DNA from: Hyphochytrium catenoides
Taxonomy: Eukaryota > Protista > Hyphochytriomycota
Direction of reading: 5' to 3'
Length of the DNA stretch: 64,000 bases
Assembly (NCBI GenBank): GCA_900088475.1
Contig: FLMG01002622.1
Span: 124,001-188,000, forward strand
Position 1 is the stretch's first letter, and every line of letters begins with the position of its first letter. The position numbers and the translations under genes are program-made. The notes beneath the pieces were generated by a model that saw only the letters and a list, made by a program, of their open reading frames with translations, did not search any database and was not told the DNA's origin. This document shows positions 1-38,319 of the stretch, one piece after another.

Positions 1-229
1 TTTGAATCTCTCTCGCTGTCTCTCTTTCTCGCTGCCTTTTCCCCCTTCTCTATATTTCTTACTCTCGCTCTCTACGGCTGTTTTCCTAATCTCGCCAACT
101 TCTCGGTGCTCTTCTCTCTTTCTTTGCTTCCTTTTTTTCTCTCTCTCTCTCGCGCGCTCGCTCTGTGCACTCACTCTCGCCCTCTTTTTAACTGTTTGTC
201 GCTCTCTCTGTTTATCCCTAACACGTCAG

Positions 230-9046
<8,817 letters not shown>

Positions 9047-24084: not shown

Positions 24085-24497
24085 GGGAAAGAGAGAGAGA
24101 CAGAAAGCGAGAGAGAGAGAGACATTTCGCTGAGGACGACGTGTATCTTGTGAAGTACAGAAAGATATCGAATGAGGAAGAATAGCAACGAAGCTTGCTC
24201 TGCTAAAAGCTTTCACCACTCAGTTCCTTCATATCTCTCTTTCAGCGTCACCTCCTGCTAGTAGGAGTTTAGAAGATAGATGATGAGGAAGAGAATGAGA
24301 ATCAGAGTCTCCATTCGTGTCGTCCTGCTTTTGTTGACCTCTTTCTCTCTCTTCTTGGACGTTCTTCCCAGGCTTCCCTCACACTTCTTTTTTTCCTCCG
24401 CAGTGAGCTGGTCTACAGTCCAAGACAGTACAGAGATAGAGTCCTACGAAGAGGGCTAGACTGAAATAACCTAGGGAAGGAGAGACTGACGATAAAG

Positions 24498-26231
24498 ATG
24501 GTAGAGAGAGACTTATCCTCCTCACACGGGGGGAGAGAGACAAAGGTGGTTGCCCTCGCTGGTGTCGGGGGCCTTGGGTCTCACGTGCTCGAAGTGATGC
24601 TTCGACAACTCTCTCTCTCTCTGTCCTCCTCTCCCTCTCCATCAACAACAACTTCTTCTTTCCCTTCATCTTCTTCTCTATATCAACCTCTCGTCCTCAC
24701 GAGAAAGAATGGCGGAGGCTTCTCTCTCTCCCATTCTTTCTCCGCTGAAGATGAGGAGAAGGTGCTGGTTGAGCCGGTGGACTATCAAGACGTAGAGGAC
24801 CTTAGAGGCGTCTTCGTCAAGCATAAAGTGTATGCCGTCGTCTCCTTCCTCAACCTTCTCATGGAGCCGAAGATCCATCAGCAGGTGCACGAGAATATGA
24901 TAAGGGCAGCCGAGATTGCCGGGGTCAAGCGGTTCATTCCCAGCGAATGGGCAACAGATGTCCGAAAGTAAGTGATTCAGCGTGGAAGAGAAGAAAGTAG
25001 GAAAATAGAGAGACAAAGAGAGAGGGAGAGAGAGAACAAGAGAGACACACATAGTTCTAGAGAAACGACCGGAGAAAGAGATAATAAGAGAGACGGAGAC
25101 AGATCGAGAACGTGTGAAGAGCCTGAGACAGAGGGAGAAGAGATAGATAGAGAGGGAGACACCAAAGGCAAGCAAGTCACGGGCAGGAGTCAACGTCCAA
25201 AGAAGGAAGAAGAGGAGAAGAACATAGAAGACCCGGCTGACACTTTTATTGGCTTTTTCTTCTTCTTTCGTCTAGGTTCCCGGACTTCCCTGCGTTGTAC
25301 AGTGGAAAGATCCCTATAAGAGAGGCTCTCGCACGCTCCTCTTCTCTTGAGTATACTCTTCCCTGCACGGGCCTCTTTATGGACTATCTTCTCCCTCCAG
25401 GAGGAAAGAAGTTCTTGAAAGATGTCTCTATTCCTGTCAACATTCAGAAGAGAATTGCCAAGATTCCCGGGACAGGGAACGAAGCAGTGACCCTAACTGC
25501 TGGAGAAGACATAGGAAAAGCTGTGGTTTGGCTTTTGGACAGGCCCAAAGGGTCTTGGCCCATCTTCTCTTACATCAGAGGAGAGACGACCACCTGGAAC
25601 CAAGTGCTTCAGGAGGCAGAGAGAGTCATCGGTAAGTCATTTCTCTCTTCCCTTGGTGGTTCTATTGTTGCCATTATTAGTGCCTGTCTTCCTCTCTCTT
25701 GCTGAACTTCGTCGTCTTCTTTTTCTCCCTCTGTCTCGCGGTCTGTGTCTCTCTTTCCCCCTGCCCCAACCCATCTCTCTCTCTCTCTCTCTTCGTTTGT
25801 CTGTCAGACTGTCTCTCTATCTGGCTGCTGTCAGACTGTCTGCTCTCTCTCTCTCTCTCTCTCTCTCTCTAGCTTCTCTCTCTTATAGAGTCTATTTTTA
25901 TCATCGGGAAGAGACTCTTGACCTTCTATGCCCCTCCCTTCAACCCTTTAACTCACTGTTCTCAAATGTAGGAGTTCCCTTCTCAGTAGAATACGTTCCC
26001 GAAGAAATGATAGAGAGAGAGATAGCCATCGCGAGAGAGAAAGGGAACCCTCTCCCTCTCTTCTATGCCGAAGTTGACGCACTCTACTCTCATGGGGCGT
26101 TGGGTCTCCCTGAGGGAGAATTTGAGGGGGAAGTGAGAGAGAGAATGACGGTCAGCAGACTGATAAGGGAGAGCTACTCATCTTCTTCCACTTCTTCGCC
26201 AGCAGTACCTACATCTCCGTCTCTCTCCTGA
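24498..26231 (+). CDS. NmrA-like / isoflavone reductase-family NAD(P)-binding oxidoreductase, 3 exons
   Basis: Exons 24498-24967, 25276-25631, 25972-26231. Rossmann start KVVALAGVGGLGSHV, VDY, AAEIAGVKRFIPSEW, YSGKIPIREAL, EYT...TGLFMDY, GTGNEAVTLTAGEDIGKAV. Confidence 0.92.
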
Positions 26232-31728: not shown

Positions 31729-32685
31729 CTCTTTGTAGGCGTTCTTCTCCCTTCTCTCTCTCCTGAGGTGCACAATATACTGGCAGGAGCTATAGAGGCT
31801 GCGCCGCCAAAAAGCGTCTTGCTGCTGAATCTTCTGGGAGGAGCCGCTGGAAGAGTGCCGCTGGAGGTTCGTCCATTGGGTTCTAGGGACGAGAGAAAGA
31901 GAGAGAGAAAGACAAAGAGAGAGAGAGAGAGAGAGAGAGAAGGACAAAGAGAGAGAGAGAGAGAGAAAGACAAAGAGAGAGAGAGAAAAAGAGAACGCAG
32001 GAGGAAGAGAAAGAGAGAAAGCGTGCAACGAAACGAGAGAGAGTTAAGAGGGGGGAGAAAATTGGAAGAGAGAGATATAAATTAAAGGTGAGGGCGAAAG
32101 AGAGAGAGAAAGAGATTAGGGCACGAAGTGAGGCTTCAAGCTGGAAGAGAGAACAACGAGGATATGCTTTCTGCTTTCTCCCCAGCTCTGGACCCTCCTG
32201 CTTAAAAAGCCTCTTTCAATTTCCGACTCACTATTTTGTCAACATCCTCTCTCTCTCTCTCTCTCTTCTCCCTCTCTCTCCCCTCCTCTTCCTCTCTCTC
32301 TCTCTCTTTGTCTCTCTGTCTCTCTCTCTCTCTCTCCTATTTGCCTCTCTTGGTCCAGAGTACGGCTCTTCCCCATCGTAAGTTTGAGCATTGGGTTATT
32401 GTCCTGGGAGAGTGGGACGGCACGGCTCGGACAGCGCAACAAGAGAAAGAGAAGGTCCAGAACTGGGTAAGAGAGACAGCGGCCAAGCTCCAACCTCACG
32501 CGGTAGGAAGATATGGCGTAGCGGGCGGTACACTTGGAGGGGGAGACGAGGGAGAGAAAGAGAGAGAGAACTGGCACGATGTCTACGGCCAGCACTATCC
32601 TCGTCTCCAGAAAGTGAAGAGAAAGTTTGATCCCAAGAATCTCTTCCGCTCTAATGAGAACATTGTACCAGCCTCGGAGGATTGA
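28020..32685 (+). CDS. FAD-linked oxidase, berberine-bridge-enzyme / 6-hydroxy-D-nicotine oxidase-like (FAD_binding_4 + BBE domain), multi-exon
   Basis: Exons ~28020-28183, 28586-28719, 28957-28999, 29397-29512, 29846-30132, 30510-30598, 30739-30832, 31094-31231, 31739-31866, 32359-32685. Motifs: WN...YPSAIV...EDVAAAIKFA, CGRH, MVIDLS, STGVGGLTLLGGHG, GLTVDHLVSMEVVLATGE, DLFWALTGGGGNFGVVTEFEF, C-terminal VYGQHYPRLQKVKRKFDPKNLFRSNENI. Confidence 0.95.
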
Positions 32686-34392: not shown

Positions 34393-34560
34393 TTTCTTTC
34401 TCTCTCTCTCTTTCTTTTGTCTCTCTCTCTCTATCCTATCATTTTCTCTCCCCCGTTAGAGAGGTATCTTTCTTCTCTGTCTCATCTTCACAGCCACGAT
34501 GCGTCTTCCAAAGATCCTTTTTTTGCTTCTTCTCAAACATAACTCTGCTGGACGCGCCCC

Positions 34561-34615
<55 letters not shown>

Positions 34616-34644
34616 CTCTGTCTCTCTCTCTCTCTGTCTCTGTC

Positions 34645-34688
<44 letters not shown>

Positions 34689-35680
34689 TCGATCTCCAGC
34701 GCCCTAAATCTCCGCCTCGAGGTCGAGCTTCCACCTCATCCAAAGGCTCAGGCAGCAGAGTGGGCGGGCGACCGTATGGCGCCAAGAATTATACGCAAGA
34801 AGACGTGGACTCTCTCTTAGAGCTCGTCAACGAGTATCTTCCCATCAAGACAGAGGACTGGAAAGCCGTTGCTAAAGCGTACAACCAGAAGGCGAGAGAT
34901 GAATATAGAGCGGTGAGAGATGCGGAGAAGTTGAAGAAGAAGTTTGGAGAGCTTCACAGCCGGACGGACAAGAGAGGACTGAAGATTGGCGATGTAGCTA
35001 AAGCAACGCAGATCAATAGACGTATATGGGAAAAGAGAAATGGAAAGGGAGAAGAGAGACAAGAAAGAGAGGAAGAAGACGAAGAGCAGCAGGAGAGAAG
35101 AGAGCAAGACGAAGAAGGAGAGAATGTCTCGACTGGTGACAAAGAGCAAGAAGAAGCGGAAGCAGAAGAGAGCACTGGCAGAGTAGAGAGAGAAGTAAGA
35201 GAGGAAGATGAAGGTAGGCCATCAGCACGCAGAAGAGAAGAGGAGCGCGGAGAGAGACGAGAGACTCGACGTTCACCGGGAAAAGAAAGCGGCTCAACCT
35301 CATCAAAGAAACGAAGACGAGGAGAGACACGACAGACAGATACAGAGGAGCAGGAAGAAGGAGTGCCCAGCCCGAGCAATGATGAGGAGAGACGAAGAGA
35401 AAGAGAAAGAAGAAGAAGAGACATGTCAACAGATGACCCTCTTCGAACCTTCCTTCTCTCGCAGCAAAGTCCAGGAGTCTTAGAATACCGAGTGAAGAGC
35501 CTGGAGGACGAAGTGAAGAGGTTGAGAGATGACGTTAAGAGGCTGGAGAGAGCGTTGAACTCTGGTCTCTCAGAAATGAAGAGCACGATTATCCAGGCTC
35601 TTCTCTCCCATTCTTCTTCCTCCTCCGCTCCTGCTATTGGTGCCGGATCAGGAAGGTCAGGAGGACGTGCGGCAATCTGA
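34067..35680 (+). CDS. Myb/SANT-like DNA-binding-domain protein (DUF6818-like) with acidic linker and C-terminal coiled coil
   Basis: Exons 34067-34162 and 34700-35680 join in frame (~358 aa). GRPYGAKNYTQEDVDSLLELVNEYLPIKTEDWKAVAKAYN...RDAEKLKKKFGEL is a helix-turn-helix Myb-like pattern; LEYRVKSLEDEVKRLRDDVKRLERAL is a heptad repeat. Confidence 0.75.
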
Positions 35681-36111
35681 GATATAAAAACACCGGGAGA
35701 AAGATGGAAAAGAGAGAGAGAGAGAAAGACGGAAATCTAGCCAAGCCAGGGACCCAACGAACAGTTCCAGAAAAGGACAGAAGTAGGCAGACAGAGAGGG
35801 AAATCAGTAGCGGGCAAAACAAGAGAGAGGACGGGAAGGGGAGACAGAAAAGAGAGAGGAAATGTCAGCGCGACTCAATCGTTGTAAAATAGGGCTGGAT
35901 TATATATACTGGAGGCTCGCTTCAAGGTCCTCGTTGTTTCTCTCTCTCCCTCTCTCTCTCTCACACACTTATCACTACTGAACAGCAGTGAGGGACTACT
36001 TTCTGCTCTGTCTCTTTCGAGTTTATAACGTCCTTTCTCTCTCTCGTCGCTTTTATTTAGCTCCACTCCCTCTTCTCCTTTTCAAAAAGCAAGCTCTCTC
36101 TCTCTCTCTCT

Positions 36112-37377
36112 TCATTTCCCTTTTGCAGCAAGGTCCAAGGCATTCAACTCCTCTCTCAGCGCCTTCACTTTCTCACAGTGCGCCTCCAACAGCGGGTTCA
36201 TCACACGGAACCAAAGAGGAGGAAACACTGCCAGAAGAGCCATCCCCGAATAGCCCGTAGGGAGGTTAGGAGACTCATCAAACGAGCGGAGGATCTGATA
36301 TCGGCGGAGAGGATAAGAGTGATGATCTGAGTGCCTCTGGAGCTTGAAGAGGAAGAAGTTGGTTATCCGCATGTTCGCGTTCCACGAGTGAATCGGACGG
36401 ACTCTCTCCCACTGCCCATTCCGGAGCTTCTCTCTCTCTAGACCATAGTGTTCCACATAGTTAATCACTTCCAAGAGAGAGAAGCCAATGAAGCTCTGAA
36501 GAGCAAAGACAAGCGCAGCTGTGGATCCGAAGAGATAGCCTAGGGAGAGAGTGAGACAGAGTGGCGCTGCGGTATTGATAGTCATAGCGTTCTGCCAAGG
36601 GACATACGGATTCTTCCCCGTCTTTCTCAGTCTCTTCAGCTCTATCTCCCAGGCGCTGCGATAAGAACCGACCACGGTCTGCCACCAAAAGCCGTACAGC
36701 GTCTGGTTCTTCCTGGACGTGGCGGGGTCATTAGGCGTCCCCACATGCCAATGATGGCCGTGGACATGCTCGATCTGGAAGTGCATGTACGAGGAGAGAA
36801 GGAGACAGATCTTGGCTAAGAAAGGCTCAATGACCGTTCGCTTGTGCCCCAGCTCGTGCGCCACGTTAATCGATAGACCCGATGTGATTCCTAAGCCTAT
36901 GATTAACCCTGCAAGCTCGTTAATTGTTAACGGCGCCGTGGCCGCATAGTAGCAGCCTCCAAGTACGGTCGCGGCATGCACAAACGGCCAGAGAAAGGTT
37001 ACTAGCCGATAGCGAAGCTGTTTATCGAGGATTTTCTCTTGCTCAGGCGTAGGATTGAGCTCCAGAGTAGGGAGACAGAGGTCCAATAGAGGGACAATGC
37101 CAAAGGTCAAGACGAGAGGAAAGTAGTGCCACGCGCCGCCGAAGAGGATGCCAATGCCGCTGGTGATGGGCAGAAGATAGACAGCAAGATAAGGGAGAAC
37201 GCTAAAGTCATTGACGGTCTTGGCATAGTTAGAGACCGTAGAGAAAGGGGCGATGGGGCTTTTCCCCGCTCCGTCTTGGCCGTCAAGCGCCTCTTTCTTT
37301 CTATTTCCTAGCCCTGCGGCTCCACCGATGTGGCGTGGGACACCCGCGGAGAACGCCAGTGAAGAAGAAGCTGTCAT
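36112..37377 (-). CDS. alkB: Integral-membrane non-heme diiron alkane 1-monooxygenase (AlkB-type), intronless, 421 aa
   Basis: All four diagnostic His boxes are present: NVAHELGHK, EHVHGHH...VGTPNDPATSR, NYVEHYGL, LQRHSDHH. Also HSWN, SPNLPTGY, PPLWFRVMNP and multiple transmembrane segments. Confidence 0.96.
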   Translation of the reverse strand: MTASSSLAFSAGVPRHIGGAAGLGNRKKEALDGQDGAGKSPIAPFSTVSNYAKTVNDFSVLPYLAVYLLPITSGIGILFGGAWHYFPLVLTFGIVPLLDLCLPTLELNPTPEQEKILDKQLRYRLVTFLWPFVHAATVLGGCYYAATAPLTINELAGLIIGLGITSGLSINVAHELGHKRTVIEPFLAKICLLLSSYMHFQIEHVHGHHWHVGTPNDPATSRKNQTLYGFWWQTVVGSYRSAWEIELKRLRKTGKNPYVPWQNAMTINTAAPLCLTLSLGYLFGSTAALVFALQSFIGFSLLEVINYVEHYGLEREKLRNGQWERVRPIHSWNANMRITNFFLFKLQRHSDHHSYPLRRYQILRSFDESPNLPTGYSGMALLAVFPPLWFRVMNPLLEAHCEKVKALREELNALDLAAKGK

Positions 37378-38319
37378 CTGATGAGCTTGGTCCTTGAGTT
37401 GCGGAAGGAGACAGCGCAGGGAGGGATTGTGTCCTTCTCCTTCTTAACTTCTATGGCAAAGTTGGAGGATGGTCTATAGACGTATCGATGGCAAAGGTGT
37501 TTGTCCGGGAGCTGGAAATGTCAAAGTGAGAGAGAAGAGATCTGAAGCTTCCTGCAGCTCTGTCTCAGATCATTGAACATTGAAGTGGCCTCTCCTCGAC
37601 GCCGCTAACTAGCTCTTGGAAGCCCCTCCCGTCTCTTGTTCCACTTCTGCGGTGGAAGAGTGAGGTCAACTCTTTTGCCTTTCTCTTCTCCTTTCCTGTC
37701 TTTGACCGCGGACATCGACGATCAGGATCTTGCCACCTGGATGATGGAGAATTTGGGGCCGACCTAGGAAAGCTACTTGCCGTCTCACCGGCTACCGCCC
37801 CCGTGAGTTCTCTGTCCATTTCTCTTGTCCACCAGCTGCAGCTGCTGCGTCTACTTGCCCTTGAGTCGTGGATCATTCTGCAACTAAAGAAGAGAAGAGA
37901 AGAGAAGAGATAGATGGGAGGGCGAGAGAGAGAGAGAGAGAGACAGGGGAAGAGAGATAGATAGAAAGATAGATACTGTCCATTAGTAGATAGGTAGGTA
38001 GACAGATACCGAGTGAGCAAGGCAGGGAAGCGACAGAGAGATAGAAGGGGATGAAAGAGAGGAGAAAGAGAGGGAAGGAGAAAGAGAGAGAGAGAGTAAG
38101 AGAGAGAGAGAGAGAGAGAGAGTGAGAGAGAGNNNNNNNNNNNNNNNNNNNNNNNNNNNNNNNNNNNNNNNNNNNNNNNNNNNAGAACGAGAGAGAGAGA
38201 GAGAGAGGGAGAACGAGAGAGAAAACGAGAGAGAGAGAGAGAGAGAAAGAGAGGACATCCTCTCTGCCTGCTTCTCCCCGCTTTCCTTCCGTTCCCTGGC
38301 CATCCTTCCCTCCTCTTCT

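Follow-up and report, generated by a model that had tools for sequence, protein, structure and literature searches.

The 64,000 nucleotides of the Hyphochytrium catenoides genome analysed here (the window, taken at its full length) carry an intact gene for an alkane hydroxylase of the AlkB type, which raises the question of whether this gene is a recent import from a bacterium, an artefact of assembly or an older possession of the host, whose lineage is Stramenopiles, Hyphochytriomycetes. The AlkB family is overwhelmingly bacterial; alkane oxidation by AlkB is seen as belonging to bacteria, and P450s are usually the only alkane oxidisers attributed to eukaryotes. The CYP52-type P450s of yeasts and fungi hydroxylate alkanes terminally, the reaction that is also predicted for AlkB in this eukaryotic osmotroph; these are haem-thiolate P450s served by a P450 reductase, and their fold and cofactor are unrelated to those of the His-ligated diiron membrane enzyme AlkB.

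The AlkB gene and its residence in the host genome

The AlkB ORF, localised at positions 36112-37377 of the minus strand, is uninterrupted and comprises 421 codons plus TGA, encoding 421 amino acids. Its start is the first ATG downstream of an in-frame stop in the ORF list, and M1 is the sole start giving the entire protein, because the next Met does not appear before residue 198. The stop-free frame spans 36115-37443 (443 codons), and the remaining five frames are broken. A complete, intronless AlkB of 421 residues with all the iron-ligand His residues had been described from the letters of the DNA alone (the sequence-only reading), and this was confirmed by the ORF, the Pfam match, the alignment to PDB entries and the invariance of the ligands. 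Neither an exact look-up nor a search of 5.8 billion proteins found an identical protein record. The features of the locus, in window coordinates, are as follows.

36112..37377, minus strand: AlkB coding sequence, intronless (ORF list, Pfam, PDB match, AF2, Foldseek)
37249..37377, minus strand: N-terminal tail, residues 1-43, predicted disordered (pLDDT below 50; unaligned with relatives)
37198..37248, minus strand: pre-TM1 motif PFSTVS..NDFSVLPY, residues 44-60, common to the Corallochytrium and Dermamoeba AlkBs (alignments)
37105..37107, minus strand: Thr91, chain-length gate position (HMMER alignment to 8f6t and 8sbb; position from PMC10113152)
36841..36858, minus strand: His box 1, HELGHK (H174, H178); His invariant in 170 sequences
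36748..36771, minus strand: His box 2, EHVHGHH (H204, H208, H209), plus Trp210, the subfamily-A signature
36442..36462, minus strand: NYVEHYG motif (E309, H310; Fe2 ligands), invariant; equivalent to Glu271/His272 of FtAlkB
36319..36342, minus strand: His box 3, LQRHSDHH (H349, H352, H353), invariant
36094..36111, no strand: (GA)n microsatellite, host-type flank, from the first base past the AlkB stop codon (sequence read)
38133..38183, no strand: assembly gap of 51 N, some 755 bp upstream of the AlkB ATG (sequence read)

The absence of introns had been presented as setting this gene apart from its surroundings, and this was not upheld: other long ORFs of the same 64-kb window, of 1067, 469 and 408 aa, are likewise uninterrupted, the Capsaspora AlkB orthologue is without introns too, and the published genome of H. 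catenoides has a mean of only 3.64 introns per gene (PMC5795050). The intronless state of AlkB is not unusual in the window or in the genome. The flanks, in turn, proved to be of the host-type microsatellite kind that had been reported, with (GA)n abutting the stop codon and CT-rich repeats read upstream of the gene.

AlkB is a host-resident gene in eukaryotic nuclear DNA. Its GC3 is 0.63, compared with 0.64 and 0.66 in the two longest other ORFs of the window, and its RSCU correlates with that of the same two ORFs at 0.70 and 0.64, the correlation between these two ORFs being 0.63; its codon usage is fully host-like and indistinguishable from that of the host. AlkB continues without a break into 36 kb of sequence with genes of eukaryotic type, including those for a GRF zinc finger, an intron-split NmrA-like protein and a BBE-like oxidase exon, and a gene for an RGS protein is found in the window beyond the gap of 51 N. 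Two sequencing runs made from this organism, one of 2011 and the other of 2017, contained 98% each of the words sampled from 35600-38130, a region which includes both AlkB boundaries, although these runs may be the assembly's own source, so that their agreement amounts to consistency and not to independent proof.

Among the neighbours, the GRF zinc-finger ORF is placed at the window edge (1-690, plus strand) and the NmrA-like gene is split by an intron into 24465-24968 and 25241-25702 (plus strand). At 32206-32682 (plus strand), 3.4 kb from AlkB, is the C-terminal exon of an FAD-linked oxidase resembling BBE (Pfam BBE, 1.3e-09); this flavin oxidase may be near AlkB by chance, or its presence may point to a small oxidation cluster. 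The ORF adjoining AlkB (34499-35680, plus strand) encodes 393 aa with an SLSL head encoded by (CT)n, a Myb/SANT-looking middle and a very acidic, Arg-rich tail, and had no Pfam match.

Protein family, predicted fold and active site

FA_desaturase (PF00487, 2e-27) was the sole Pfam domain in the AlkB protein, and HMMER matched it to the solved AlkB entries 8f6t (AlkB-AlkG of Fontimonas thermophila, 1.7e-81) and 8sbb (5.4e-72). NCBIfam gave no match for the protein, a neutral result which is no test either way. The AF2 model, built on 20 clade members, had a mean pLDDT of 86 and a pTM of 0.84, and Foldseek aligned it with 8f6t (TM 0.79, rmsd 1.7 A) and with 8sbb (TM 0.77), and returned no fold other than AlkB with E below 1e-3. 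The predicted model has the six transmembrane helices of the AlkB fold, which it has in common with FtAlkB/FtAlkBG (8f6t, 8sbb) and with AlkB of P. oleovorans/putida GPo1, as it does the His boxes and the NYxEHYG motif.

The diiron ligands of FtAlkB are His137/141/167/171/172/272/311/314/315 and Glu271 (PMC10113152). When this list was mapped through the HMMER alignment, in which the chain numbering corresponds to the paper numbering plus 3, the ligands of the window AlkB were H174, H178, H204, H208, H209, E309, H310, H349, H352 and H353, all of them invariant in 170 aligned sequences. The protein is 41% identical to bacterial AlkB over about 320 residues and bears the same nine His and one Glu; it is unlike bacterial AlkB in being encoded by a eukaryotic nuclear gene and in having about 43 extra disordered N-terminal residues. 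An N-terminal extension of about 55 aa had been claimed from the sequence. The extension is real: residues 1-43 are predicted to be disordered and are not conserved, whereas residues 44-60, conserved with Corallochytrium and Dermamoeba, do not form a free extension. In the AF2 model TM1 begins near residue 61.

At the chain-length gate, where a bulky residue limits the length of the chain, FtAlkB has Ile54 and P. oleovorans AlkB has Trp55 (PMC10113152). The residue at this position was small in 24/24 members of the eukaryote clade described below, while in the bacterial relatives it was Thr in 9/146 and mostly Val, Ala or Ile in the rest. A small gate residue is also found in the bacterial long-chain AlkBs, and long-chain substrates are predicted for the window AlkB from its Thr91.

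Relatives of AlkB and the origin of the gene

The best matches to AlkB in the search of 5.8 billion proteins were eukaryotic, with 47-50% identity, and came from two Corallochytrium genes (a species that we presume from the 'Clim_' prefix of their names), from Dermamoeba algensis (Amoebozoa), from the filastereans Pigoraptor chileana and Capsaspora owczarzaki, from the hemistasiid diplonemids Namystynia and Artemidia and from Cafeteria, a bicosoecid stramenopile. Two more species, Chromosphaera perkinsii (Ichthyosporea) and Phalansterium solitarium (Amoebozoa), emerged from a profile search. None of the bacterial relatives exceeded about 51% identity to the window AlkB. The Capsaspora gene is localised on a nuclear scaffold of 3.8 Mb, where it adjoins WAPL, and its product is annotated as 'alkane-1 monooxygenase', whereas the other named eukaryotic homologues are without annotation. 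Our literature search found no paper on eukaryotic AlkB and none describing the clade reported below; the 'AlkB' of the Diplonema genome paper is a DNA demethylase and not an alkane hydroxylase, and was set aside.

A FastTree analysis of 167 sequences placed the 11 named eukaryotic sequences together with 10 others in one clade (97). For IQ-TREE (LG+C20+F+G4 PMSF), 61 sequences were used: 20 belong to the clade, and the other 41 represent bacteria and had been reduced to a set in which mutual identity is below 58%. P0121, a near-copy of P0004, was omitted. The clade was again recovered, at 95/82 with a bootstrap that had not fully settled (correlation 0.986), and it contained 20 sequences and none of the 41 bacterial representatives. 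These 20 are the 11 sequences of named eukaryotes, the window AlkB included, and 9 sequences on contigs of 1.3-2.9 kb, which are taken as eukaryotic only because their contigs are the size of mRNAs; contigs so short fit with transcripts or with eukaryotes at low coverage but are no proof of either, and the bacterial clades include contigs of up to megabases. The nearest group outside the clade was P0034/P0101, weakly placed (92/74), which includes a Pseudobacteriovorax MAG and Tara contigs. The terminal branch of the window AlkB (0.63) is ordinary for the clade, and the protein resembles the other eukaryotic homologues, to which it is 40-51% identical, in having a single FA_desaturase domain and no fused partner. 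On a metagenome contig (L089:1-9710), one diplonemid-group AlkB (P0169) was found to have wide spacers, the upstream one measuring 1.4 kb, and as neighbours a Peptidase_C69 gene and two genes without a Pfam match.

Horizontal acquisition from bacteria, as put forward in the sequence-only reading, survives in only one of its forms. The phylogeny that it had called for was computed, and both the FastTree and the IQ-TREE trees place the gene within a broad clade of eukaryotes, the outcome named there as evidence against it; with Holozoa, Amoebozoa, diplonemids and another stramenopile around it, a transfer specific to this organism is unsupported. An old bacterial origin, on the other hand, is likely at some depth, given that the family is overwhelmingly bacterial, and descent of the eukaryote AlkB clade from one old bacterial acquisition is the most likely course. 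AlkB could have reached the hyphochytrid line by an ancient duplication into the two subfamilies described below with many later losses, or by transfer between eukaryotes.

Giant viruses were considered as a vector and rejected, since the AlkB-like genes of IMG/VR reach at most 40% identity and none of them belongs to the eukaryote clade; when ten homologues from viral contigs were added to the tree, the clade was preserved (SH-aLRT 83) and took in no viral sequence. The viral genes include a long-branch AlkB-like group with 36-39% identity on very large AT-rich contigs (L009, L010, L019; IMG/VR, 98-720 kb), AlkB-like copies with 31-35% identity in giant-virus MAGs (L021, L069, GVMAG), and copies with 27-29% identity on viral contigs of marine origin, which number in the dozens and measure 4-110 kb (within L022-L088).

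Two subfamilies of eukaryotic AlkB

The eukaryote AlkBs were divided into two subfamilies, A and B, which are defined in the present analysis. Subfamily A, with moderate support (89/74), contains the diplonemids, the window AlkB, Dermamoeba, Corallochytrium and P0004, and subfamily B (98/91) contains Cafeteria, the filastereans, Chromosphaera, Phalansterium and others. The residue immediately following GHH in His box 2 was Trp in 12/12 members of A and Lys in 12/12 members of B, while the same position in the 146 bacterial relatives was occupied by Val, Arg or Ala, with Trp in none and Lys in 2. The residue following the ligand His209 (window residue 210, nt 36748-36750) is a clean marker with three states, for A, B and bacterial sequences. 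HELGHK is likewise shared within subfamily A, as is the pre-TM1 motif (with Corallochytrium and Dermamoeba), and the HHxxP position (Pro356) was Pro in 12/12 members of A as opposed to Ala in 11/12 of B. The window AlkB branches within A and carries Trp210, HELGHK and Pro356; in this it sides with Corallochytrium and Dermamoeba, whereas Cafeteria, the other stramenopile, belongs to B. Forcing the window AlkB and Cafeteria to group together cost 37.7 log-likelihood units with an AU p of 0.048, a borderline value for a grouping picked after the tree had been seen.

Holozoa, Amoebozoa and stramenopiles have members in both A and B, and the diplonemids are in A. The presence of both subfamilies in each of the three groups fits an old duplication followed by many losses, although transfer between eukaryotes may also account for it. 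A fuller scenario, in which two ancient paralogues A and B predate that split, were lost many times, use a eukaryotic carrier (b5 or ferredoxin) and represent an ancestral route of hydrocarbon oxidation, seems unlikely to us as a whole. If it were true, AlkB would be an ancestral and overlooked means of hydrocarbon oxidation in heterotrophic protists.

Electron partner and docking patch

No rubredoxin is fused to AlkB, because FA_desaturase is its only Pfam domain, and no pattern of rubredoxin, cytochrome b5 or 2Fe-2S ferredoxin was found by a six-frame motif scan of the 64-kb window, a scan that covered motifs only, with 38053-38090 masked, and that an intron-split gene could escape. The earlier statement that the window holds neither a fused rubredoxin nor a rubredoxin gene accords with Pfam and with the six-frame motif scan. 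In the same scan, neither alkG (rubredoxin) nor alkT (rubredoxin reductase) was seen near the window AlkB, which is not part of an operon, in contrast to bacterial AlkB. Three HPGG matches were dismissed as candidates for cytochrome b5, since they sit in short stop-bounded frames and are attributable to chance; one of them, at 37732-37743 on the AlkB strand, 360 bp upstream, is in a stop-bounded frame of 40 residues with no b5 context.

FtAlkG docks on FtAlkB through non-specific electrostatic contacts with six arginines, at positions 143, 148, 169, 215, 284 and 287. The window AlkB has a basic residue at 3/6 of the equivalent, rubredoxin-facing positions (R180, K252 and R325), compared with a mean of 3.8 in the bacterial relatives, 2.8 in subfamily A and 1.75 in subfamily B. 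The difference between the eukaryote clade and bacteria gave a Mann-Whitney p of 7e-7, uncorrected for shared ancestry, and the equivalents of R284 and R287, the most conserved docking positions in bacteria, are largely lost in the eukaryote clade. This partly eroded docking patch hints at a changed electron partner. Rubredoxin, b5 and ferredoxins are all acidic, and for this reason the eroded patch singles out none of them; that AlkB was rewired to an electron donor of the host, as had been proposed, is a guess.

Proposed function and alternative explanations

The sequence, the predicted fold, the ten iron ligands, the clade membership and the host-like codon usage were observed here. The explanation that we consider best overall, and probably correct, is that of a nuclear gene of the host for a complete integral-membrane diiron monooxygenase, belonging to subfamily A of the eukaryote clade and most likely of old bacterial descent, with the mechanism of a hydroxylase as deduced from its relatives. 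With it a known enzyme family gains a new member, on a little-noticed branch that many unrelated single-celled eukaryotes have in common. In the proposed mechanism, six transmembrane helices would hold the diiron site, with its His ligands, on the cytosolic side; a hydrophobic chain would reach it laterally out of the membrane and be hydroxylated at the terminal methyl with O2 and two electrons. The Thr91 gate would admit long chains, of roughly C12-C16 or longer, and for a host that is a saprotroph of pollen and plant litter the substrates may be wax and other biogenic alkanes, or similar alkyl chains, with the alcohol product presumably feeding fatty-acid oxidation. The electrons would have to come from a small acidic carrier docking on the cytosolic face, possibly cytochrome b5, a ferredoxin or a rubredoxin whose gene is elsewhere. 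Alkane as the putative substrate of the eukaryote-clade AlkBs is carried over by analogy with the bacterial enzymes.

A recent, lineage-specific transfer of a bacterial alkB into this protist would accord with a family that is so predominantly bacterial and with a gene that has no introns and no fused domain of eukaryotic type; however, other long ORFs of the window are intronless too, the nearest sequences are eukaryotic, and the supported clade that contains the gene leaves out every bacterial representative, the closest bacterial match has only about 50% identity, the codon usage is the same as that of the host, and the subfamily-A Trp and the pre-TM1 motif, found in Corallochytrium and Dermamoeba, are absent from the 146 bacterial relatives, all of which makes such a transfer very unlikely. 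Bacterial contamination or a chimeric assembly might be suspected from the N gap 755 bp upstream of AlkB (38133-38183), but the host-type (GA)n directly follows the stop codon and leads without interruption into 36 kb that carry genes of eukaryotic type, GC3 and RSCU agree with the host, eukaryotes supply the nearest relatives, and the 2011 and 2017 read sets, which may be the source of the assembly, each have 98% of the words across the boundaries; we regard this explanation as scarcely credible.

A silent relic that merely looks intact is highly improbable, as the frame is free of stops over 443 codons while the other five are broken, all the ligands and the near-invariant positions of the family are kept, and the terminal branch (0.63) is ordinary for the clade. 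It is more conceivable, though we hold it to be rather doubtful, that this is a functional enzyme of the AlkB fold whose natural substrate is something other than a free n-alkane, the candidates being another alkyl chain (a fatty ester, an ether lipid, alkene epoxidation) or an endogenous hydrocarbon. The position of Trp210 directly after the ligand His209, a subfamily-specific change beside the active site, and the altered docking surface would favour such a substrate, and bacterial AlkBs take esters and further substrates; against it, the ligand set and the fold are unchanged and the gate residue is within the range of bacterial long-chain AlkBs.

For this gene alone the consequence of reading it as an old host AlkB is modest: it is one further member of the clade and not a fresh bacterial import. 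The conserved clade of two subfamilies, with a range that takes in filastereans, ichthyosporeans, Corallochytrium, amoebae, diplonemids, a bicosoecid and this pseudofungus, would add phagotrophic and osmotrophic protists to the consumers of plant-wax and cyanobacterial alkanes, and would alter the assignment of alkB reads in metagenomes and metatranscriptomes. It also poses a biochemical question, namely what reduces a eukaryotic AlkB. As a further observation, a rhizosphere metagenome of 2024 contained about 5% of the words sampled from the locus, which suggests that the organism or a close relative is present in soil.
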